The notes beneath the pieces are model-generated. The model was not told where the DNA came from. It saw only the letters and a program-made list of their open reading frames with translations, and did not search any database. A stretch of 64,000 nt of DNA from Salpingoeca rosetta (Eukaryota > Protista > Choanoflagellata): the NCBI GenBank assembly GCA_033442325.1, contig JAWQFM010000013.1, positions 272,069-336,068 of the forward strand. The letters are read 5' to 3'. This document shows, in pieces, positions 11,129 to 64,000 of this stretch (position 1 is its first letter; every line of letters begins with the position of its first letter). The translations under genes were made by a program, and so were the position numbers.

Positions 11129-12105
11129 CGTTTCGCTTGCTTCCTCACTCGCTCGCTTGCTTCCTTGCTTGCTTGTTTGCTTGCTCTTTCGGCTGTCCTC
11201 TCTTTCCTTTCTCTTCAGTGCACGCGCCGGGAAATTCAAAAGTGCGGTTGGCTTTTTGCTTGCACACCCTTGCACTACAAGCCCGCTTGCCCGCATATTT
11301 TAAGTTTTGTAATGACCGTTACACCTCCCCGCACGCAAGCAAGCCGCCTCACACACAACAGAGCAGAAAACCAGGACGCACCGCTACACCACACACGCTA
11401 CGCTGCAGCACGGGGGCTTGTGTTGCTGTGTTGCCAGTGCTGTGCATTCGTTCATCAGCAGCTAGTGAGCAAGTGGTGAGCAGAAGCAAGTCAGCCGTGG
11501 CCCGTGTGCCTTGATTTCTGTTGAAGACTCACAGAGCCAGACACCCCAAGCTAAGCACGCATCAGACCCATCGCCAAGTTCCTATACCTGAAGATCCCCT
11601 TCGTCTGCCCCTCGTCCAAAACCATTGTGTGCGCATGCGTGCGTGCACAATCAAACTCGCAAAGCCACCGCACAAGCTTCAACAGGGCTGCAAAGAGGTC
11701 AGCCATGGACACAAGAGAGGGCAGAGGGGGGTGACACATTCTGCCCTGTTCCCATGCTGTTCTGGTGTTGCTCTGTTGCTGCCGTGTCGATTGCGTGCTC
11801 GCACGACACCACCACCCTCAATGCATGTGGTTTGAATCGTGTGCATTCACATGCACACACGCACGCACACACGCACGCACGCACACACGCACGCACATGC
11901 ACCCACATGCACACGCACCCGCACACGCACACATGTATTTCTCGTCATTGCTTCCCTCACCTATCATGCAACCTCCTTCCATCGAACAACTCATCCCTCA
12001 CATCCTTTCGCCCTCATCGTTCTCGTCTTGAACAACAACAACACAGGCACTCCACCACAACCACAGTCCACAGCACAAAGCACACTTGCCAGCTGCACAG
12101 GCAGC

Positions 12106-15100
12106 ATGCTTCAGCCAAGTGTACTGGCGCTTGTCGTGCTCATGCTTGGCATGGCAGCTGCCATCATTCCAGGAGCGCACGCCAAGCGAGAGCTGCTGCT
12201 GCATGAGCGCTTCGACATGGAGACGCGCTTCAGCATCACGCCGCCAACCGTGTTCATGAGCATCAAGTTCTTCCCAGATGACAGCGGCAGGTTCCTGGTC
12301 CTCGACAAACGGGGCACCGTCTACATCGGCCACGAAGACGACAGACCGCTACAGCTTGAACCATACCTCAATCTTGACAACGTGGACTTTGGGGACGAGC
12401 GTGGGTCGCTGGACATTGAGATTGATCCAGCGTTCTCCACCCTTAGCAAGCAGTTTGTCTACGTCTACTACAGCCCCATCGACCCGGAGCAGTTTCGCGT
12501 GTCTCGGTTCGTCCACGTGGAAGGGCCTGGCCACCTCAGCAGCAAGGCCGACCCACACTCAGAGACGGTCATCTGGCGCGACGCGCTGGGGTACCCTGGC
12601 AAGTTCCACTACGGTGGTGCGCTGCTCTTTGGCCCAGACCAGCAATACCTCTACCTCACCTCTGGCGACAAGACCAAAGCAGATTGGGCACAGGACATCT
12701 GGAGGACCACGGGCTGCGTGTTTCGGTTCGACCGCGACGGAAACCCACACCCAAACAACTTTGGCCTCACCTTTGATGGCAAGGGGGGCGTGGAGGACAC
12801 CATGTTTGCCTACGGCCTGCGAAACGGCTTTCGTGCCACCTGGGACATTCCCGATCCCGTGGCAGCCGCTCCACCTCCCGCATCACCGACCAACCCCAAC
12901 GCCAACGCCACCACCACCGCCGCCGCCGCCGCCGCGACCACTGCAGGAAGCAGCAGCAACAGCAACAACAACAACACCACCAACACCAACAACAGTAGCG
13001 ACAACAACAACAACAGTAGCGACAGCAAAAGTGCAAGTGATAACACTGGCAGCCAACAGCTGCCATATGCACCAAGGTTGCTCGTGGGTGAGGTTGGTGG
13101 CAACAATCAACCCCTGTCATGGGAGGACATCCATGTGGTGGAGAATGGGGCGAACATGGGCTGGCCACTGTGCGAAGGAGCGTGCGACAACCCCGATTTC
13201 AGCATGTCGTGCACGTGTCGCAAGCACGCAAACCCGCTCTTCTCGTACCCGCACGCTGGCACCAACGCGGCCGTCGTGCTTGGGCCCGTCTACCGTGGTG
13301 ATGAGTTTCCGCAGCAGTTCCGCAACAACATCTTCTTTGCAGACTACGCGAGGGAGGAGATGTGGCGACTGCAGCTCAACCCAAGCACGGGTGCCGTGGA
13401 GGAGGTGGCGCTGTTTGCAAAGGACGTCGGGGAGATCACCCACATCACACAGGGGCCGGACGACATGCTCTGGCTCACCACGAGTCGTGGCCAGATCAAG
13501 CGCCTCACATACGACGAGGGCCACTTGCGGCCCGAGATTGTTACTGCGCAGGCGAGCGTTGTCACGGGCATGGCGCCCATGCAAGTTGACTTTACCGCGT
13601 ACGCCGTGCACCAGCAGGCAAACATGACGCTGTCGTACCGGTGGTCGTTCAACGACGGCACGGCCGATGAGTTTGCTGCAAACGTCACCCACCTGTTCCG
13701 CCGCGAGGGGGAGTTCCACGTGCAGCTGCGCGTCACGGACAGCGAGTACCGCACGACCGCCCTGGCCAAGGCCATCACCATCGCCGTTGGCCAAGCGCCC
13801 ACTGCACGCATCGTCTCCCCCGTCAACGGCTCCACGTTTGTGGCGCTAGACATCATCAGGGTCGTTGGCGTGGGCACCGACGACAATGCACTCACGGAGG
13901 ACAACTTCTCGTGGAACGTCAGGTTCTTGCACGATGACCACTTCCACCCCGTCGAGTCTGGTATCAAGGGCCGCGCGTTCTCCTTCCAGGTCGCAGACAC
14001 GGGCCACACGTACGAGGGGCGCACGGGCCTGGAGCTCGAGCTCACTGTCACAGACAACGCCGGCCTGTCCAGCACCACCAGCGTGGCCATCTTCCCAAAG
14101 AAGGTGGATGTCATGTTTGACACCAGCCCCGAGGGTGCTGCGCTGTACGTGGACGGCCTGCCACGTGTCACGCCCTTTGTCCTGGACACGCTTGTGGGCT
14201 TCCAGCACCCCGTTCGCGCGCCCGACATGTCTTGCGTGGAGGACACGATGAACAAGTTTGATACGTGGGACCACACCCCGGTGCGCGACTGGCTGCTGGT
14301 GGTGGGCGAGGATGAGGCTGGGCACAGCTTCCAGGCGCACTTCGAGCCCGCACCCTGCGAGGGCTCCACGGGCATTCCCGTGCGAGATGGCCTCGTTATG
14401 CACCTCGCCTCTGATGCCGGCGTGTACACACAGCCAGACACGGCCCGGCTGCGCCTGTGGACGGACCAGGTTGGTGACAACAACCTGAACCGCATCCAGG
14501 GCACGCCCGTGCTTGTGCGCGATGGCGGGCCCAACGACTCCCCGTACGTGCTGTTTGACGGCGACGGCGACGCCTTGTACCGGGATGGGTTTGTTGGCCT
14601 GCCGCTCAACACGCGCGACCGCACGCTTGTGACGGTGGTGCGCTACGAGTCTCCGGGTTACGGTGGCGTGGTGTATGGCTCGCCGGACTGCAACGGCGCT
14701 TTTGGCGCGGGCGTGTCGCCGCACACCCCTGGGCGCCTGTCCATGCGCGGCTACTGCGGCCGGGCCACCATTGATGCCAACCGCGTGGCGCAAGACGAGG
14801 GCTGGCTCATCCACACCGTTGTCCTGGACAGCAACCACGTGTGGATGTATGCCAACGGCGAGGCGGTGACGAACAAGGCAATGGTGATGCGCACGCGCGG
14901 AAGCGAGGACGACAGCCGCTTTGTGGTTGGCGCGGACATTGACCTGAGTAGCCACGTGCGCATGGGCGTGGCGCATGTGCTGCTGTACGACCGCGCCCTC
15001 ACGGAAGCCGAACTGCAAGACGTGCACGCGTACCTGGTGAAAGAATACCTGTCGGGGCTGGACGACCTTGTTCGCCTGTCTGTGCCCATCCCGCAGCACG

Positions 15101-16869
15101 GCAAGCGCTACATTGTCGGCTACGTGCAGCTCGACTGGGTGGTGACGGTGGCGGAGGACAGTCCCAGCGCCCCAAATCCAGACGAGCTGGTGGTGGTCAT
15201 CTCCCTCAACGGCGGCGCTGCTGTCGTCAGCAGCTTCTTGCAGAGCTCCCTTCCACTCTTCTACCTGCCGGTTGGCGCGCACACGATTGACATTGCGGTT
15301 GCGCCTGCATCTGCAGCGACCCCTGCATACTTTTTTCCTTCGGCCGAAGCCACTGCTGTTGGCACGGCACGCGCCGCAGACGTGTCATCTGCAGCAGGAG
15401 GAGCAGGGGCAGCTGGCTTGTCATCGTCATCAGCATCATCAGCGGATGCTGTGGGTGCCGACCTGGGCACGGTGGACGGCATCCCTCTGCCGTCGCTGCA
15501 CATTGAGTTTGATGTTGCACTTGGGCCGTACGTGGCAGACGACACGTTTGTAGTTGAGCGGCGGGCAAGCGCGCTACTGCGCGTTCTTGACAACGACATT
15601 GCGCTGTACGGCCAGCCTCCGCTTGACGTGAGCAGCATCAGCATTGTGGACAGCCCAAACCTGGGCACCCTGCAGTTGACGGAGAGCGGTGAGCTTGTTT
15701 ACAACAACCTGCGTGGCAGTGATGGCGACGTGGACACGTTTTCGTACACGGTGCGGGATGAAGCGAGCCGGCGGTCAAACCAGGCTGCAGTCACATTGAT
15801 GTTGTCGGGGGATGCACCACCCACCATGTCCACATCATGGTCAAGCACCTCCACATCCTCCACCACATCCTCCACCACAACAACTACAACTACAACTACA
15901 ACTACAACTACAACTACAACTACAACTACAACTACAACCACGACCACAACTACAACTACAACCATGACCACAACTACAACTACAACCACGACCACAACTA
16001 CAACTACAACTACAACTACAACTACAACTACAACCATCACGACGACGGCGACGACCACAACCACAATCAGAGCGCCCAAGACCTCTCTGCAGTCAATGAT
16101 TGCCCAGCTGCTTGCCAGTGTGTCGCCACGCAACGTTGGCGGATGCGTGCTGGTGATGCAGGCCACCCCCTCCAGCGTGATTGCAGCGCCGGACAAGACC
16201 GTGTACGGCTGGCTCGACGCATCTGCGGGCGGATACGTGGCCACGGCGCGAACACCAGACGTTCGCTTCGAACACGACGCCAGCGTCCCACACCTGTCGT
16301 TCTCCGGGTCTGGCGGGCTGCAGGTTGCTGGGCCGTTGCGGGGCCTCCCGCTTGATAACAGACCGCGCACGCTGATGGCCGTGGTGCGATACTGGTCACC
16401 AGCAAAAGGCGCTGTTGTGTACGGCAAGCGCAAGTGCGGGGCGACGTTTGGGCTTGGCGCGGCAGCGGCCGTGGCCCGAGCAGGGCGGTGGCAGACTAGC
16501 ACGCTGAGGACGGTGGGGGCGCTGGTGCCGTCCGTGCGTACGCGGTGCAACGACATGGTGTCGGGAGCGGCGTTTGGCATGGGCGAGTGGGTGGTGCAGT
16601 CGGCGATGGTGGTTGGGCCGACGGTGTTCCAGACGCTTGGGCACGACGTTGTCGGTGTCGGACTGAACACGTTGAAGACGGGCGATGGGTCGCTGTTCAT
16701 TGGGCAGGATAGCGTGAGTCAGCAACACCCGGTGGTGGACATTGCGGCGGTGGTGCTGTTTGACCGGGCGCTGAACGTGGACGAGTATTCGTTTATGGTG
16801 GAGTACCTGCGGTGGAAGTATCTCAATCAGGAGCCAGACGCAGACAAGGTGCTGTCATATCTGACATGA
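12106..16869 (+). CDS. Intronless secreted mosaic protein (~1587 aa): GSDH/PQQ-dependent sugar dehydrogenase-like beta-propeller + PKD/Ig domains + LamG/ConA-like + Big_9/cadherin-like Ig + Thr-rich linker + second LamG-like domain
   Basis: Single ORF. Signal peptide MLQPSVLALVVLMLGMAAAIIPGAHA at 12106. GSDH motifs ERGSLDIEIDPAF, HYGGALLFGPD..LYLTSGD, FAYGLRN, GEVG, GANMGWP, YRGDEFP..F..NIFFADY, GPDDMLW. PKD motif YRWSFNDG..VTHLF..G.F.V.L.VTD. LamG-like GLVMHL..WTDQ..FDG.D..LLYDRALT. ADDTF..VLDND..DTFSYTVRD Ig. Poly-Thr. No TM at the C-terminus. Confidence 0.9.
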   Translation: MLQPSVLALVVLMLGMAAAIIPGAHAKRELLLHERFDMETRFSITPPTVFMSIKFFPDDSGRFLVLDKRGTVYIGHEDDRPLQLEPYLNLDNVDFGDERGSLDIEIDPAFSTLSKQFVYVYYSPIDPEQFRVSRFVHVEGPGHLSSKADPHSETVIWRDALGYPGKFHYGGALLFGPDQQYLYLTSGDKTKADWAQDIWRTTGCVFRFDRDGNPHPNNFGLTFDGKGGVEDTMFAYGLRNGFRATWDIPDPVAAAPPPASPTNPNANATTTAAAAAATTAGSSSNSNNNNTTNTNNSSDNNNNSSDSKSASDNTGSQQLPYAPRLLVGEVGGNNQPLSWEDIHVVENGANMGWPLCEGACDNPDFSMSCTCRKHANPLFSYPHAGTNAAVVLGPVYRGDEFPQQFRNNIFFADYAREEMWRLQLNPSTGAVEEVALFAKDVGEITHITQGPDDMLWLTTSRGQIKRLTYDEGHLRPEIVTAQASVVTGMAPMQVDFTAYAVHQQANMTLSYRWSFNDGTADEFAANVTHLFRREGEFHVQLRVTDSEYRTTALAKAITIAVGQAPTARIVSPVNGSTFVALDIIRVVGVGTDDNALTEDNFSWNVRFLHDDHFHPVESGIKGRAFSFQVADTGHTYEGRTGLELELTVTDNAGLSSTTSVAIFPKKVDVMFDTSPEGAALYVDGLPRVTPFVLDTLVGFQHPVRAPDMSCVEDTMNKFDTWDHTPVRDWLLVVGEDEAGHSFQAHFEPAPCEGSTGIPVRDGLVMHLASDAGVYTQPDTARLRLWTDQVGDNNLNRIQGTPVLVRDGGPNDSPYVLFDGDGDALYRDGFVGLPLNTRDRTLVTVVRYESPGYGGVVYGSPDCNGAFGAGVSPHTPGRLSMRGYCGRATIDANRVAQDEGWLIHTVVLDSNHVWMYANGEAVTNKAMVMRTRGSEDDSRFVVGADIDLSSHVRMGVAHVLLYDRALTEAELQDVHAYLVKEYLSGLDDLVRLSVPIPQHGKRYIVGYVQLDWVVTVAEDSPSAPNPDELVVVISLNGGAAVVSSFLQSSLPLFYLPVGAHTIDIAVAPASAATPAYFFPSAEATAVGTARAADVSSAAGGAGAAGLSSSSASSADAVGADLGTVDGIPLPSLHIEFDVALGPYVADDTFVVERRASALLRVLDNDIALYGQPPLDVSSISIVDSPNLGTLQLTESGELVYNNLRGSDGDVDTFSYTVRDEASRRSNQAAVTLMLSGDAPPTMSTSWSSTSTSSTTSSTTTTTTTTTTTTTTTTTTTTTTTTTTTTTTMTTTTTTTTTTTTTTTTTTTTTTTITTTATTTTTIRAPKTSLQSMIAQLLASVSPRNVGGCVLVMQATPSSVIAAPDKTVYGWLDASAGGYVATARTPDVRFEHDASVPHLSFSGSGGLQVAGPLRGLPLDNRPRTLMAVVRYWSPAKGAVVYGKRKCGATFGLGAAAAVARAGRWQTSTLRTVGALVPSVRTRCNDMVSGAAFGMGEWVVQSAMVVGPTVFQTLGHDVVGVGLNTLKTGDGSLFIGQDSVSQQHPVVDIAAVVLFDRALNVDEYSFMVEYLRWKYLNQEPDADKVLSYLT
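15879..16066 (+). repeat. Coding (ACAACT)n-type repeat encoding a ~65-residue poly-Thr mucin-like stalk
   Basis: ACAACT hexamer array with ACC/ACG variants, in frame with the 12106 ORF. Confidence 0.9.
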
Positions 16870-17715
16870 GAGTGGCCATAATGATGTGCGAAAGTGAGAG
16901 AAATACGCGTGTGTGTGTGTGTGTGTGCGTGTGTGAGAGGAGTAGAGGAAGATTGAAAGGATGAGAGGCAGTGAGGGGAGGGGAAGAAGCAGGGTGAAGG
17001 AGGGTGGGGTTTGCGCCTGCATTCTGCATGTTGGCAATAGCGTGCGCGCGAGCGTGCGCGCGAGCGTGCGCGTGGAGCCAGACAGATACTCAGATAGGCA
17101 AGAGTGGTGGTGGTGCTGTGCATCCGTTTTGGTAGTTAGCTCTGCATGCACAACACGGCTCAAGGGTTCAATAAGCTATGAATGAGGGGGAGGGGAGGAG
17201 GGAAAGGGAGCATCGTGTCTGCTTTATTGATGTTATGTTATGTTACGGTAGAATTCATGATGCTTGCGCCTCTCGCTCTCTCTCTCTCTCTTGTGTGTCA
17301 ATAAGTACGACTCCCAGTTACGGGGTTACGGATAGGTTTTGTATGTATTGTGTAGGCAAACTGCACAGGTGCTCGGGTGTATTGCACTGAAACAAGCTTG
17401 CAAACACCACACCAATCAATATACGAAGCTGAGGAGCTGTCCAACGAAGACAATACAAGAAAAGAAGAAAGAACTACACACATGGTGGGGGGGGGGAGGA
17501 GGGAGTTCGTGTGGTGGCTGATGGTCGTGATCAATGACACCGACGTGCAGCCATATGATGGCGCGGAATCGCACGAGGCCACCATCGCTCACACCAAACA
17601 TTACAGACATCTCTTCTCGTCAACGTCAATGTGCACACGCAGATACCAAGCGTATGCACACAGAAAAAGGACGCACACACACACACACGCAGACAGACAG
17701 ACAGACAGACAGACA

Positions 17716-57882: not shown

Positions 57883-60800
57883 TTATGGCTCCAAGGCGAC
57901 GACCGAGGTCTGATCCGTACCACCACCACCGCTCTGGCCCTCATCAGAAAACGGCACAAAACTCAGTCCGCTGCGATCAAATGAACGGGCATTCACAACA
58001 TCGTCAAATGTCAAGGTCAGCATGCCAGACGTCATGTCGATGACGTAGCCTGCAACGCTTGGCCTGGTATCGTCCCCATGGTAGCCGGCAGCCATTACGC
58101 CAGCCTCGGGATCAGCCTGGTTGCCTTGCATGTCTCGCACAAAGCCACGCTCACCAACCAGCCACGTGTTCTCCTGCGCGGTTGCAACTGCAGCGTCCAG
58201 TTTCAGCGTCCCAATAAACGCCCCAGTCAGGTCCACCCGCAACACGTGCATCTCCACGTACTCTGCTCCGGCAGTCTCGCTAGCTGCACGGTATCCGGTG
58301 TCACCGCCCGTGCTCAGCGGTGCGCCTGCAACAAACATCTTCGTGGCATCCAGCGTTCCCGATGCAACAGGCTCCGAGAACGTCAGCTGCACCACAGCAC
58401 TGTCAAGGTCAAACGTGAAGCGGAGCAGGGCTGGTGGCACACTGTCTGCAACAAAGTCGCTGCTCACACCAAGGGCCGTGGAATGGGGCGTCCCCACAGC
58501 AGCGTTGCTGGCCGTGTCACGCACAAACCCAGCATCCGCACGCAAGTATGTCGATGCTCGTGCAGTCGCCAAGCCGCCACGCGCCTTCAGCAGGTACACG
58601 TCGGCGTCTGCAAGCGCCATCCTCAGCACCAGGGCGGTTGCGCCGTAGGATACCTTGGTTCCGTTGGTCCCCAGTCGCAACTGCGTCGCACCAGCCAGCG
58701 CGCTGTTCGCCACCCCCTGAATAACCAGCAGGCTTGCATTCAGCGATGAGGCAAGCACGGGTTCGTCAAATGTCATCTCAAGGAGCGCCTCGTTCATGTC
58801 CAGCGCAAACCGCCGCAACACGGGGCCGGTGACATCAGCCACAAACCGAGCTGGCTGCAGGTTGCGCGTGGCATGGATGGCTTCATTGGTGTTGCCAAAA
58901 CCGTCCGCAACCGCACCAGCAGCCAAGACAAGCACACTTGTCGCAGCATTCGAGGCCACACTGCGTCGGGCCTTGAGCTCGTTCAGATCATCAGCGCCCA
59001 ACACCACGGCAATCTGCGTGGAAAGCAAATCAGCCGACAACGAACTGCCAGACCAACCGTGTGCCTCGCTGTCTGGTGTCAACCGGAACCACGTCTCGTT
59101 GGACGTGGCGCGACCATCGCGGTCGACGACATCAACCGACGCGTTCGAAAGCAGCACGACGGCACTGACATCAAATGTGTCTACCGCGACAACCTCGTCA
59201 AACGTCAGGACCAGAACCCCGTCGTCCATGTCGAGTTCAAACGCATCCAGCACGGGCCCGCTCTCGTCTGACAGGAACACCACAGGCACGAACGCCTCCG
59301 TCGCAGATATGGCATTACCGGCCGTGTCAGTCACCGCGCCGGCCGCGACCTGCACCAACGTTCTGTTCTGCGTTGCAACGAGACTCGGGCGCAGTTGCAG
59401 CGCCTGCAAATCAGCTGCCGACAGCGACAGCGACACGTGCCGACCATACCCGGCGAGGATGAAGCCCCCTTCCTGCTGCACGCCTGTGCCTGCACGCCGC
59501 AACGTCACGGCACCAGCATCCAGAGCACCAGTCGTGATATTGAGGAACGAGATTGCGGTCACTTGAAGCGACTGTACGTCCACCGTCTCCGAGAACTCCA
59601 GCGTCACGTTGGCATGGCCGCGCTGACTCAAGTCGACGCCGACCGCAACAACGCGCGGGGCGACGCCGTCGCGCTCAAATGCACCGCACGCAGCTGCCTC
59701 GTCGGCCGTCAGCGCACCAGCCCTCTGCGCGAACACGTCGGAGAAGGCTTCCGCGTCGTAACGCAAGAATGTGCTCTCCCGTGACACGGCGAGCGACAGG
59801 CTCGCGCGCAGACGCTCCACATCCTCAAAGGCCAGCTCGACGCGCAGCACCGGGAACGCCCACGGCTGCCCATCCGCAACTTGTGAGCCGCTGCCCAGGC
59901 GCACCGCCTCAAACCGCAATTCATTGCCGCTGACGACTCGGACTGGCCCGTTTGCTGTGGTGACGGTGGTCACGACGGGGAACGTGTTGGCTGTGGCGTT
60001 TGTAACGTTCTGCAGCACTACGCGGGACAAATCAAGACTTGCTCCAACGACCGTCTCAGAGAACGTCAGCCACAGCTCGTTGCTCGTGAGGGACAGCGTG
60101 AAATCAACCAGCACGGGAGCAGTCGTGTCGGTGGTGAAGTTGGCACACAGCAGCGCACCCAGGGCGCTTACGCCGGAGCCTTCGCTACCACGGGCAACAG
60201 CGCGTCGACCGGCACGATCCTGCACGAGCCCCGATGCGTGTGACAGCCATGCTCGCTCACGCGAAACTGCAATGCGCTTCTGTGTGAGCACATCCACGTC
60301 CGCGCTCTCCAACGCAACGTCGATCCGGCGTGCCAGCACGTCCGTCCCCGCCACGTGCCCACCCTGTAGGCGGTGTCCACTGCCCGCGGCGGCCGAGGAC
60401 GAGTTCGGTTCAAGCACAATGGCGCTGACGTTCAGCGTGCCCACATCCACACTCTCGTTGAACACCAAGGTCAACACCCGCGAGTTCATGTTCAGGTCAA
60501 ATTCAACCAGCAGCGGTTGGTTGACATCCTGCACAAACGCACTTGCCTGCAGGGGCGCGAGCACGGGCTCCAAGGCATTGCCAGCCATGTCATCACACAA
60601 GTGTGCTGCCATCAGCAACCCGGTGTTGCTGGCGTTGGCAAACAGGCCACCCGAGGCCTTGACGGCGTCAAGGTCCCCACGCGTCATGCGCAACTCAATG
60701 CGTAGGCCGTTATCTCCACGCACGTTGCCACCACGCAAGGTCACGTTGCGCCCACCACCAGCGCCCACCAGCGTCAGCGCGGTCGCGTCAACGCTCGACA

Positions 60801-63800
60801 CACGCACGGGCTCAGTGAACACCAGCACCAGACTTCCCAGTGTCATGTCGACTTCGTACGACACAAGCCGCGGCCGGCGAGTGTCCGCCCGGACGGTCTT
60901 GGCCTGAAGCGCCCCTGTGGCCAGTACCTCGTTGCCGCTAACATCCGTCAGGCCTGTACCAGCGTTCAATGCAAGGAACGTGTCTGCCGTTGTTCGGCCG
61001 ATGCCATCCGACAACTGCACCTGGAAAGCATCGTTTGAGCTCAGTGTGATGTTGACACGCCGCGAGACACCGGCGTCTACAACCCGTGACCCAGAGAGCG
61101 TCAGCGCCGTGTCATTGCTTTGCAGAATCACCGAGGACGGCAGCGTGACGTACCGACGGGCCAGCTCAGTCGTGTTAAGCACCTTGTCAAAGGTCAGAAC
61201 CAGCACCTCCGCAGTCATGTCCAGCTCAAACCCAAGCAGCACTGGCGCACGCGAGTCTCGTGCAAACACCGAGACTCTCAGCCCCGTGGTGGCGACGAGC
61301 GCATTCGCGGCAGTGTCTGTCGCTGCCGCTGACCCTGCAGACAGGAAGCAGCTGTCAGCGCTCAGGCACAGGCCTGGCACAGAGTGGATGGCGTCCGCCA
61401 GTTCGGCACTCAGTTTCACTGTGACGATTGTGTCATAGGCGGACAGCTCCACGCCCACAACACCGCCGTCGAGCGTAACACCGATGGGAGCTGTCGCACT
61501 CGCAAGCAGCGCAACGTGCTGCTCCTGCAGTGACGCCCGCGGCACCGGCTCGGACATGTTCAGCGTCAGCAACAGGGCTGTCATGTTCAGGTTGAACGAA
61601 AGCAGCTCGGGCGGAGTGGCATCACCTTCAAAGGCCGTGGCCACTAGTGCGCTGCGTCGTGCAAGCGCAACCATGCGGTTGCCGGCCATGTCTGCGACAA
61701 AGCCAGCCGCAGCCACCAATCTGGAGGAAGCGATTGCCTCACCAACCCCTTGCGTCGTCTTCAAGGCCCACAAGGCCTGTTCTGACAGCTTTACGGTGGC
61801 CTGCAGTGCCCCGGATCCCACGTTCGCACCAGCTGGAACTGACACCCGACTACCCGCGGGCACTGTAAAGCTGGCTGTGTCAGTCGCGTTGGTCGCAGTC
61901 AGGGTGAGGGCACTCGCGTTTAGCATGGCAACATCAACAACCTCGGAGAATGACAGGTCAATGACGCCCAGCTCGCGGCTGAAGTTAAAACCGACCAACG
62001 CGGGCGGTGTTCCGTCAGCTACCACGCGTGTGGCTTGAAGTGCAGCTCCACGAACAACCGCCAGGATGGCAGCACCATCCAATCCTGTGAGCGCCTCGCC
62101 ACTCGCCACCAAGAACGTGTTGTTCCGGGAGGTTGCCAGGGCGCGCTGGCCCTTGATCGCGTTCAGGTCCTCCTCAGCCAGGATCACCGTGACACTGAAT
62201 CCGTCACGGCTGTTCGTGTTGGAGCTGGCTGCCAGCAGGGTGTGCGAAACCAGCGTGCCTGCCTGTGTGGCGGCGTCCGCATCGCCGACGTTCTGAAGCC
62301 TGAGCTCCTCCGCTCTCAGGCTTTGCGCGCTAACGGCGGCGCTCAGGGTCAGCTTGAGCACACCCTCGTCGAGATCGAGCTCAACACCAACAATGCTTGC
62401 ACGTCCTGCGCTGACGTAACTGGTACAAGCAAGCGCAGATGTTCTGTTTGCGAGGAGGTTACCTGCCATGTCCTGCACAGCACCCGCATCCATGAATGCA
62501 TACGAGGTGTCCTGAGACACGGCAATGTCCAGTCGCGTGGAGATGGCCTCAAGCTGTGCTGAGGACAGTGCAACCACGAGCCCGGTCTTCGTCGCACCAT
62601 CGCGGTAGCTCACCCGCAGCGGGGCTTCAGACAAGCGCAAACTGCCCACGAAGCTCGCGGGAGCACTGCCACCGGCTGTCGCGTTGACCAGCACGATCCT
62701 TGACACATCCAAGCTCGACGCATTGACTGGTTCATTGAACTCAAGCTCAAGAATACCGCGCGTGAGATCGAGCAGAGCAACCTCAGTCAACTCGGGGCCG
62801 GTCGCATCTCCAATGAGCGTTCCAACAGGCACTGCGCTTTGAGCGGAGTTGTCATTCCCAAACACATCAGCAGCAAATCCATTGTCGGTTCTCAGGAAGC
62901 AAGATGCTGGCGTTGTGCACAGGCCCGCGGCCGCCAGCGCCTTGATGCCGTTTGCGTCACCCTCTTCAAGGCTCAACGTGAAGCTGCGCAGGTCTGCACT
63001 TGAGCTCAGTACACTTCCTCGAAGCTGTACATCCCACGAAGTTGAGTTCCCATTGGCGGAAATGCTGCCCAGGCGAGAGTCAATGCTGTCGCGGGCAACC
63101 GGCTCGTCAAACCGCACGCCGAACGTACCTGCGTCCAGGTTCAGGCTGAACTCGAGCACACTGGGACCGGTGTTGTCCAAGACAAGCAGGGGGGTGTCCC
63201 GCTCTGGATCCGAAGCGGTGCTGGGCTCAATCCCAACGACGGCGTTTCCGCTTGCGTCCATGATGGCCCCATCCATAAGTCGCAGCCAGCACGATGCTGC
63301 GGAGACACACAGCGATGAGCGAAGCTTGATGCCAGCGGCGTCCTCAAGGCTGAGCGTGAGTGTCAGCAGGGTGCCTGAAGCTCCAACATCCACTCGCTCT
63401 GGTTCAGACAACACCAGCACATCTGACGTGTGACCCGGGAAAGCAGCACCCTCCAACTTCAGCTGCGTCGCGTTCAGGCTGGTCTCATCCATGGGCTCCG
63501 AAAATGACAACACAAGCTCCCGCGAGTTCAAGTCCAAAACCACAAATCCAACCAGTGTTGGTCGGGACACGTCGGGCTCAAGTACGCTGGGCCGAGCCGT
63601 TTCATTCAACGAAACCGGAGCCGAGGCAACGCGGAAGTGGTTTTGGACAAACCCAGCTGTCAGGCCCAAACAACACGCGTCTCGTGCGAGGCACACACGA
63701 GCAAACTGCATTTCTTCGGCCATGCTGTCAGCGATGGCAATGGCCACGCCATCTTGCTCGTACCTTATGGAGGTTGCATTGGCACCTGACACAAACACGG

Positions 63801-64000
63801 CGCTGCTCTCGTTTCCACCAGGGACAAAACCACCGTGTAGCGCAGCTGCGTGCACAACAGTGGAAATTTGGCTGCCATCACGGGAGCAGTTGCTCAGCGT
63901 CAGCACGCTCTCCAGACCAAGGGTTGTGGTGTTCACTGGTTCATCAAACACGAGCGTGACCCCCACATTCTCATCAGTCCACGTCACATTGAAAGCGAGC
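57883..64000 (-). CDS. Giant extracellular repeat protein (>2030 aa, N-terminus outside window): about 16 tandem ~135-aa beta-rich Ig-like repeats
   Basis: Uninterrupted ORF open to the window edge. Repeat consensus D..(P/A)P.L..F.LD(M/L)..G.L.L.F.E.V...S.....L......G.....L...D...K......T.L....G.V.D..GN; many N-x-S/T sequons; Cys pairs in some repeats. Confidence 0.88.
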   Translation of the reverse strand, partial: LAFNVTWTDENVGVTLVFDEPVNTTTLGLESVLTLSNCSRDGSQISTVVHAAALHGGFVPGGNESSAVFVSGANATSIRYEQDGVAIAIADSMAEEMQFARVCLARDACCLGLTAGFVQNHFRVASAPVSLNETARPSVLEPDVSRPTLVGFVVLDLNSRELVLSFSEPMDETSLNATQLKLEGAAFPGHTSDVLVLSEPERVDVGASGTLLTLTLSLEDAAGIKLRSSLCVSAASCWLRLMDGAIMDASGNAVVGIEPSTASDPERDTPLLVLDNTGPSVLEFSLNLDAGTFGVRFDEPVARDSIDSRLGSISANGNSTSWDVQLRGSVLSSSADLRSFTLSLEEGDANGIKALAAAGLCTTPASCFLRTDNGFAADVFGNDNSAQSAVPVGTLIGDATGPELTEVALLDLTRGILELEFNEPVNASSLDVSRIVLVNATAGGSAPASFVGSLRLSEAPLRVSYRDGATKTGLVVALSSAQLEAISTRLDIAVSQDTSYAFMDAGAVQDMAGNLLANRTSALACTSYVSAGRASIVGVELDLDEGVLKLTLSAAVSAQSLRAEELRLQNVGDADAATQAGTLVSHTLLAASSNTNSRDGFSVTVILAEEDLNAIKGQRALATSRNNTFLVASGEALTGLDGAAILAVVRGAALQATRVVADGTPPALVGFNFSRELGVIDLSFSEVVDVAMLNASALTLTATNATDTASFTVPAGSRVSVPAGANVGSGALQATVKLSEQALWALKTTQGVGEAIASSRLVAAAGFVADMAGNRMVALARRSALVATAFEGDATPPELLSFNLNMTALLLTLNMSEPVPRASLQEQHVALLASATAPIGVTLDGGVVGVELSAYDTIVTVKLSAELADAIHSVPGLCLSADSCFLSAGSAAATDTAANALVATTGLRVSVFARDSRAPVLLGFELDMTAEVLVLTFDKVLNTTELARRYVTLPSSVILQSNDTALTLSGSRVVDAGVSRRVNITLSSNDAFQVQLSDGIGRTTADTFLALNAGTGLTDVSGNEVLATGALQAKTVRADTRRPRLVSYEVDMTLGSLVLVFTEPVRVSSVDATALTLVGAGGGRNVTLRGGNVRGDNGLRIELRMTRGDLDAVKASGGLFANASNTGLLMAAHLCDDMAGNALEPVLAPLQASAFVQDVNQPLLVEFDLNMNSRVLTLVFNESVDVGTLNVSAIVLEPNSSSAAAGSGHRLQGGHVAGTDVLARRIDVALESADVDVLTQKRIAVSRERAWLSHASGLVQDRAGRRAVARGSEGSGVSALGALLCANFTTDTTAPVLVDFTLSLTSNELWLTFSETVVGASLDLSRVVLQNVTNATANTFPVVTTVTTANGPVRVVSGNELRFEAVRLGSGSQVADGQPWAFPVLRVELAFEDVERLRASLSLAVSRESTFLRYDAEAFSDVFAQRAGALTADEAAACGAFERDGVAPRVVAVGVDLSQRGHANVTLEFSETVDVQSLQVTAISFLNITTGALDAGAVTLRRAGTGVQQEGGFILAGYGRHVSLSLSAADLQALQLRPSLVATQNRTLVQVAAGAVTDTAGNAISATEAFVPVVFLSDESGPVLDAFELDMDDGVLVLTFDEVVAVDTFDVSAVVLLSNASVDVVDRDGRATSNETWFRLTPDSEAHGWSGSSLSADLLSTQIAVVLGADDLNELKARRSVASNAATSVLVLAAGAVADGFGNTNEAIHATRNLQPARFVADVTGPVLRRFALDMNEALLEMTFDEPVLASSLNASLLVIQGVANSALAGATQLRLGTNGTKVSYGATALVLRMALADADVYLLKARGGLATARASTYLRADAGFVRDTASNAAVGTPHSTALGVSSDFVADSVPPALLRFTFDLDSAVVQLTFSEPVASGTLDATKMFVAGAPLSTGGDTGYRAASETAGAEYVEMHVLRVDLTGAFIGTLKLDAAVATAQENTWLVGERGFVRDMQGNQADPEAGVMAAGYHGDDTRPSVAGYVIDMTSGMLTLTFDDVVNARSFDRSGLSFVPFSDEGQSGGGGTDQTSVVALEP

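Follow-up and report, generated by a model that had tools for sequence, protein, structure and literature searches.

The gene described here lies in a 64,000-nucleotide stretch of genomic DNA from Salpingoeca rosetta, a choanoflagellate (contig JAWQFM010000013.1, referred to as contig 13, positions 272,069–336,068 of the forward strand; assembly GCA_033442325.1), which is called the window in the following. An open frame spans positions 11839–16869 (+) of the window. At 12106 stands the first Met that precedes a hydrophobic, signal-like stretch, and from this position the frame (12106–16869, contig 13 284174–288937) gives a product of 1587 aa with no internal stop. A (CA)n/(CACG)n microsatellite is located directly upstream (11848–11933) and a (GT)n/(GCGT)n microsatellite directly downstream (16900–17075). 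The mechanical start of the frame at 11839 arises because the upstream microsatellite is read through as His/Thr/Arg repeats. The original prediction of a secreted mosaic in one open frame, with a β-propeller as seen in the pyrroloquinoline quinone (PQQ) sugar dehydrogenases fused to lectin-like domains, was confirmed as an observation. Five of its domains make up a bacterial secreted module of ~1000 residues, which was most likely taken in intact and has remained collinear since before the choanoflagellate radiation.

The gene is the published model PTSG_05474 and a genuine nuclear gene of S. rosetta. Among the S. rosetta genes in Table S1 of Matriano et al. (2021; PMC7971027), three carry PF07995; they correspond to the three GSDH loci detected in the genome. 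PTSG_05474 is given there with PF07995;PF00801, a coding sequence of 4599 nucleotides, 1532 aa, two introns and a GC of 0.616, as well as an Alien Index of 320, the label ‘FOREIGN’ and the LCA ‘Ureukaryote’. The main text of the same paper nowhere mentions GSDH or PKD, and the OrthoMCL age label suggests that PTSG_05474 falls outside its final 175 candidates.

The gene was first described as 4.76 kb without introns. The frame is indeed uninterrupted, but the published model, with its two introns, is 55 aa shorter. This difference may reflect repeat length in the older assembly. A 73-aa low-complexity insert in the propeller and a Thr-rich stalk were both checked for introns, and nothing was found in them that accounts for the two introns and the 55 aa. 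The (ACAACT)n repeat of the stalk contains no GT, and the insert was rejected as an unspliced intron, as the donor/acceptor pairs tried by eye break the frame or leave <50 bases. Given the two introns of the model, ‘intronless’ must be read as an uninterrupted open frame and not as a proven unspliced mRNA. Long intron-free stretches are in any case not peculiar to this gene, since another uninterrupted frame of >2034 aa with a GC of 0.61 is present at 57883–63987 (−), running towards the window end.

A bacterial-type gene could also have come onto this contig through bacterial contamination or chimeric assembly. The window contains no N, exons of NUP210 are found 5–14 kb downstream on the same contig, and eukaryotic neighbours flank the gene on both sides in an assembly of 55.4 Mb in 68 contigs. 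The GC content at third codon positions (GC3) is 0.75 compared to 0.73 in a NUP210 exon, the flanking microsatellites are those of the host, and the gene was annotated in an earlier, independent assembly too. The gene is thus physically part of the host genome and not a contaminant.

Pfam, BLAST and the translation agree on the layout first proposed, with a signal peptide, GSDH, PKD/Ig, LamG and Big_9 domains (Table 1), of which the second LamG was found by BLAST only. Cleavage of the putative signal peptide is probable after AHA, and the orthologue in S. infusionum has an equivalent N-terminus. The Pfam GSDH match (PF07995) reaches 121.3 bits against a cut-off of 25 and falls in two stretches, aa 51–246 and ~325–470. 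The 73-aa insert, coded with CAA/CAG repeats, is absent from all aligned relatives. An AlphaFold2 (AF2) model of aa 28–985 made with 42 sequences has a pLDDT of 87.8 and a pTM of 0.75; the propeller is mostly above 90, and only the insert is disordered (pLDDT 32–36).

Table 1. Features of the PTSG_05474 open frame and its predicted product; positions are those of the window.
Feature	Residues (aa)	Window positions	Strand	Basis
Putative signal peptide	1–27	12106..12186	+	Inspection: short N-region, 17-residue hydrophobic core, small residues before Lys26
GSDH-type six-bladed β-propeller	28–485	12187..13560	+	Pfam GSDH, AF2, Foldseek
Low-complexity Ala/Thr/Asn/Ser insert (73 aa), propeller loop	250–322	12853..13071	+	Alignment
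PKD domain	486–560	13561..13785	+	Pfam PKD_4, 45.4 bits (aa 489–554)
Fn3/X1-like Ig sandwich, four-His	561–665	13786..14100	+	Alignment invariance, AF2
Second β-sandwich, InlB-B-repeat-like	666–757	14101..14376	+	AF2; invariant Cys710 and Cys751
LamG/concanavalin-like domain 1	758–985	14377..15060	+	Pfam, collinearity, AF2
Big_7-like Ig domain, then Ala/Ser/Gly-rich linker	986–1135	15061..15510	+	BLAST collinearity
Big_9 (bacterial cadherin-like Ig)	1136–1235	15511..15810	+	Pfam Big_9, 30.9 bits (aa 1141–1230)
Thr-rich mucin-like stalk	1236–1330	15811..16095	+	Translation
LamG-like domain 2 and stop codon	1331–1587	16096..16869	+	BLAST to LamG domains of relatives

The domains behind the propeller were assigned by several routes. 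An Atlas search with aa 561–757 gave actinobacterial clusters and weak Flg_new_2 leads; for the second β-sandwich its match to Flg_new_2/PKD clusters (score 0.78) is a lead only. When aa 836–970 of the first LamG are scanned alone they match Laminin_G_3 with 32.4 bits (cut-off 27.6); the domain is collinear with the PF13385 domains of the relatives P0118 and P0119 and is modelled as a β-sandwich with a terminal helix. A direct Pfam scan of the Big_7-like region gives no match, but its collinearity with P0115 extends to aa 1063, where P0115, P0116 and P0117 have Big_7. The Big_9 domain matches the Big_9 domains of P0117, P0131 and P0114. The stalk is coded by (ACAACT)n at 15880–16034, a tandem repeat of 25.8 copies with a GC3 of ~0.2–0.4. 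The second LamG (aa 1349–1575) is matched by BLAST to the LamG domains of P0125 (7e-15), P0124 (1e-11) and P0117; as it has no Pfam match when scanned alone, its assignment is one of transitive homology. A scan of the target against NCBIfam gave sub-threshold noise only.

An exhaustive search with the propeller gave 9726 matches, headed by a 3663-aa haloarchaeal protein and the 1710-aa protein of S. infusionum. More than 50 prokaryote-type proteins are collinear with aa 51–982 of the target by BLAST, at 45% identity in the first half of the propeller and 35–36% across the next 670 residues. In the propeller, no prokaryote is more than ~47% identical to the target. GTDB genomes that carry the propeller signature belong to Actinomycetota, Planctomycetota, Verrucomicrobiota, Pseudomonadota, Acidobacteriota, Chloroflexota, haloarchaea and Nitrososphaerota, and the identity of these GTDB matches to the target is never >44%.

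The closest known systems are prokaryotic secreted PKD-LamG proteins named ‘glucose/arabinose dehydrogenase, beta-propeller’ from Demequina, Haloferax/Halovenus, Planctomycetota, Verrucomicrobiota and Rubricoccaceae. Across the collinear region (35–45% identity) they share with the target the same His, the Arg-Asn pair, the cysteine loop and the four-His site. The five-domain module has the W/H/H/H/H set and paired Cys in them too, and Big_7, Big_9 and LamG recur in their tails. In P0117, P0115, P0124, P0125 and P0131, the last of which is located on a Planctomycete-like contig, the layout continues with Big_7, Big_9 and more LamG, and then bacterial sorting domains. The prokaryotic proteins end in type IX secretion system (T9SS)/FlgD_ig, dockerin or similar sorting domains and carry a CCHYGG motif, while the target has neither; instead it adds the disordered loop insert and the Thr-rich stalk. 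As bacterial relatives have the same domain order, the mosaic was not assembled in a eukaryote but inherited whole. This fits the bacterial type ascribed to it earlier: its nearest relatives outside the choanoflagellates are prokaryotic, and its propeller is nearer to Asd and sGDH than to HHIP.

The animal HHIP and HHIP-like proteins are extracellular and have a propeller of the same GSDH-type fold, and the gene might accordingly be thought a vertically inherited HHIP-like gene. However, HHIP is far more distant in both sequence and structure and has no PKD, four-His Ig or LamG domain. HHIP chains are matched at 6.5e-6 compared to 2e-10 for bacterial Asd, and in Foldseek bacterial Asd/sGDH come first with a TMt of 0.80–0.86 (2ism, 3a9g, 2g8s, 3das) compared to 0.56–0.64 for HHIP. 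Fish HHIPL1 is placed with the outgroup in the propeller tree described below. It was thus correctly foreseen that HHIP would share the fold and lack this architecture, and we give vertical descent from an HHIP-like gene, taken together with contamination or chimeric assembly, next to no credence.

The protein of S. infusionum (P0114, from a transcriptome) is collinear with the target through the propeller, PKD, both sandwiches, LamG, Big_9 and the last LamG. Other named relatives in the clade of the target come from S. kvevrii, Choanoeca perplexa, Monosiga brevicollis, S. punica, Bicosta minor and Diaphanoeca grandis. Among the 30 matches looked up by name, all eukaryotes inside the clade are choanoflagellates, and both orders, craspedid and acanthoecid, are represented. 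One metagenome row of the clade sits on a contig with clearly eukaryotic genes. The haloarchaeal protein and the distant fish HHIPL1 fall outside the clade.

Rows covering <75% of the propeller profile were dropped from the trees. A FastTree of 325 rows placed no GTDB prokaryote in the clade of the target. In a tree of the propeller only (C20 quick search, rooted on HHIPL1 and distant GSDH proteins) 19 rows, consisting of the named choanoflagellates, the target, its paralogue on contig 14 and metagenome rows, form a clade with a Shimodaira–Hasegawa-type approximate likelihood-ratio (SH-aLRT) support of 94. With this rooting the clade is nested among prokaryotes, at a great distance from HHIPL1, as would be expected of a gene of prokaryotic origin. 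The five-domain module was analysed more carefully with LG+G4 over 858 columns and 59 rows. These included 43 of ~115 eligible prokaryote-type rows, for which BLAST score was the main criterion; choanoflagellate-type rows were taken in only if they extend to aa 687 of the target or beyond. The target and P0114 pair at 100/89, the 16 choanoflagellate-type rows are set apart from the 43 prokaryote rows at 95/97, and a single change suffices in 97% of the bootstrap trees. Nodes within the choanoflagellate set are weak. The paralogue on contig 12 is in no tree, because it is spliced and its exons were not joined.

The two paralogues in S. rosetta, PTSG_05175 and PTSG_07060, and the M. brevicollis protein XP_001742590 have propellers ~41% identical to that of the target, and PTSG_05175 and XP_001742590 belong to the same choanoflagellate clade in the propeller tree. 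Unlike the target they are shorter and have eukaryotic tail modules. PTSG_05175, the copy on contig 14 (479706–480761), has GSDH and somatomedin B domains and three introns (Matriano et al., 2021, Table S1). A single exon contains its propeller, and behind it come a Thr-rich linker and Cys modules resembling somatomedin B, which are interrupted by introns rich in (GT)n; in this copy a eukaryotic matrix module has taken the place of the bacterial tail. PTSG_07060 has 10 introns (Matriano et al., 2021, Table S1) and is by elimination the copy on contig 12. The M. brevicollis gene carries introns as well (3530 bp for 785 aa).

A recent capture of a prey bacterium's gene, specific to S. rosetta and still bacterial in style, was the origin first proposed. 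The uninterrupted 4.76-kb frame, the Alien Index of 320 and the prokaryotic best matches outside the choanoflagellates, at 35–45% identity, would all fit such an event. Against it stand the collinear S. infusionum orthologue and its 100/89 pairing with the target, the ceiling of ~47% on propeller identity to any prokaryote, a GC3 equal to that of host exons, host-type inserts coded by microsatellites and the two introns of the published model, and we consider a recent capture very unlikely. Of the proposed horizontal transfer the prokaryotic origin is therefore supported by relatives and trees, whereas the fresh, prey-derived capture is contradicted by S. infusionum. Nor can missing introns serve as the mark of a recent capture, as introns occur in the S. 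rosetta and M. brevicollis paralogues and GC3 is host-like; the absence of introns is a poor clock for the age of a transfer. The S. infusionum orthologue, the presence in both orders, the host-like GC3, the host-type inserts and the introns of the paralogues together point to an old transfer. It predates the choanoflagellate radiation, and the gene is an old, vertically inherited resident.

In the history that we favour, the founder would have come from a prokaryote at a time when craspedids and acanthoecids had not yet diverged. It would have been taken in as a ready-made secreted multi-domain protein with GSDH, PKD, four-His Ig, β-sandwich and LamG domains, probably also with Big_7, Big_9 and further LamG behind. 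The lineage of S. rosetta and S. infusionum would then have kept the long bacterial layout, lost the sorting domain found at the C-terminus of the bacterial proteins and acquired low-complexity segments of host style (the loop insert and the stalk). In other paralogues the tail would have been exchanged for eukaryotic modules, for example somatomedin B.

Alternatively, there could have been two or more independent transfers, with the long form of the target and S. infusionum separate from the short PKD/somatomedin B forms. The bacterial LamG/Big_7/Big_9/LamG tail is kept in the long form only, aa 324–982 are slightly closer to the bacterial P0117 (36% identity) than to S. infusionum (32%), and the nodes joining the two choanoflagellate subclades are weak (56–57 ultrafast bootstrap). 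However, the 95/97 branch has all 43 prokaryote rows together on the same side, the single change in 97% of the bootstrap trees points to one event, and the GSDH-only tree likewise gives one clade. Independent transfers are therefore judged improbable.

Several points weigh against a single old transfer from a prokaryote. The direction and number of transfers, and the nesting within prokaryotes, depend on the rooting. The choanoflagellate rows are long-branched and of odd composition, which may attract them to each other artificially, and the slightly closer match to P0117 than to S. infusionum also counts against it. Other eukaryotes could be present among the rows beyond the 30 named matches. 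With these points considered, we hold the identity of the gene and its history as given here to be highly probable.

The propeller can be compared with the PQQ sugar dehydrogenases, represented by the sGDH of A. calcoaceticus (1c9u/1cq1) and the Asd proteins of E. coli (2g8s), P. aerophilum (3a9g), S. coelicolor (3das) and T. thermophilus (2ism). The target shares with them the six-bladed fold, the catalytic His, the Arg-Asn pair and the GWP motif, but is only 15–20% identical, has an extra disulfide-type loop after GWP (CEGxC...CxC) and carries ~1100 further residues of binding modules. The structure prediction gave a six-bladed propeller nearest to Asd/sGDH. With the residue roles in the PQQ site of sGDH taken from the literature (PMC6881789), His168 (HYGG) aligns with the general base His144, and Arg239/Asn240 (YGLRN) align with Arg228/Asn229, the pair contacting O5/O4 of PQQ. 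An alignment of 42 sequences from bacteria, archaea and choanoflagellates shows no variation at His168, Arg239, Asn240, Glu98, Asn333 and Glu340 or in the GWP-CEGxC loop, so that the predicted retention of the HxG and GxRN residues holds for the whole set.

The other half of this prediction, that the C-terminal RxR is not evident, was borne out too. Neither the target nor any of its relatives has RxR, which binds the carboxylates of PQQ (Arg406/Arg408 in sGDH; ahead of the final GPDG blade in Asd); the position reads G-E-I-T-H-I in the target, where E-I-T replaces it, and A-G-x-V-V with no basic residue in the prokaryotic relatives. Canonical PQQ binding is therefore not assured. The prokaryotic members read CCHYGG in the region corresponding to aa 164–173 of the target, with a vicinal Cys pair directly before the catalytic-type His. 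This pair recalls the Cys-Cys ring beside PQQ in methanol dehydrogenase. The TIGR02111 (PqqC) profile was silent in the S. rosetta genome and in control genomes alike.

A new detail is an invariant four-His cluster in the Ig-like domain that follows PKD. Trp603 (13912–13914), His609, His612 and His614 in the motif HDDHFHP (13930–13947) and His634 (14005–14007) are invariant in two alignments, of 42 and of 48 sequences, the latter from bacteria, archaea and choanoflagellates, and the four His are as strictly conserved as the catalytic His of the propeller. The domain is modelled with a pLDDT of 95.7. In VIA its best match is the B1 domain of 9kvu (Z 11.5), followed by Fn3-like modules of CbhA (Z ~10), and it resembles the Fn3/X1-like modules of bacterial glycoside hydrolases. 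Fold searches gave generic Ig/Fn3/PKD domains only (CopC, Z 8.2, among many) and thus no clue to the four-His site, and a search of PDB sequences with the Ig and sandwich region found no relative. The cluster is a candidate metal site with no counterpart known from the PDB.

Taken together, the protein, whose secretion is predicted from inspection of the translation, would reach the extracellular matrix or the cell surface, where the LamG, PKD, Ig and cadherin-like modules would hold it on glycans. The pocket on the top face of the propeller (His168, Arg239, Asn240, Glu98, Glu340) may bind a sugar and probably oxidise it with a bound quinone-type cofactor, while the neighbouring four-His site probably holds a metal. 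The strong constraint on the pocket favours chemistry over mere binding. A catalytic, PQQ-like mechanism is nevertheless only a tentative proposal, to which we give somewhat less than even odds. For the reading as a whole, with history and catalytic mechanism blended, our rough probability is 0.62.

The protein could also be a non-catalytic matrix adhesin or lectin, whose pocket would bind a ligand and do nothing more, like that of HHIP, and which would use no cofactor. Several findings that count against a catalytic function would be explained in this way. The RxR carboxylate contacts are missing family-wide, and the other carboxylate binders are variable, including the equivalent of Lys377; the Cys pair before His168 is lost in most choanoflagellate members; and the architecture is mostly adhesion and lectin modules with a mucin-like stalk. 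The invariance of the five pocket residues across bacteria, archaea and choanoflagellates is, however, what is expected for chemistry, and the fold is nearer to Asd/sGDH than to HHIP. We regard an adhesin or lectin as a serious possibility, to be held at about one chance in three, while retaining sugar oxidation as our working proposal.

The fungal AA12 pyranose dehydrogenase CcPDH is named in one study (PMC13384848) as the only eukaryotic PQQ enzyme with shown activity apart from the T. cruzi protein described there, and AA12 shows that the carboxylate contacts to PQQ can be rewired (PMC6881789). CcPDH resembles the target as a eukaryotic, secreted, six-bladed PQQ-type propeller joined to carbohydrate-binding and accessory domains. 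Its partner is a cytochrome b domain, whereas the conserved partner in the target is the four-His Ig domain. No AA12 chain is found among the 13 PDB sequences matched by the propeller profile at E ≤ 1e-5. A more far-reaching idea is that GSDH-PKD-four-His-Ig proteins make up an uncharacterised class of extracellular carbohydrate oxidoreductases, with electron transfer from a quinone site in the propeller to a metal at the four His, a bacterial origin before choanoflagellate diversification and activity kept since. The choanoflagellate proteins would then add another eukaryotic lineage of PQQ-type enzymes to that of fungal AA12, one that relies on cofactor scavenged from prey. This idea is speculative and in our view unlikely.

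Horizontal gene transfer into choanoflagellates is well documented, and with a high Alien Index on record for this gene, the claim of a transfer by itself adds little. What is of interest is that an intact module was later diversified by exchanging its tails for eukaryotic matrix modules, a clean example of bacterial surface proteins seeding the extracellular matrix toolkit of the closest relatives of animals. The module is unstudied even in bacteria; its catalytic-type triad and its four-His site are invariant, and the canonical contacts to the PQQ carboxylates are missing. Being genetically tractable, S. rosetta is a good system for it.

The second long frame of the window, at 57883–63987 (−), contains Big_5-like repeats of ~125 aa with a recurring F-x-L-D-M...L-x-L-x-F-x-E-P-V pattern. 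One stretch passes the Pfam threshold for Big_5, a bacterial Ig-like domain (25.6 bits vs 23.6), and the frame may encode another large extracellular protein of bacterial type. BLAST finds no similarity between it and the target, and the two are unrelated genes. Outside the window, a metagenome contig contains a choanoflagellate-type GSDH-PKD gene (P0156) followed by genes with malectin domains. The best archaeal match, from Halovenus (P0113), is also named as malectin-containing, so that the pairing of propeller and malectin recurs.

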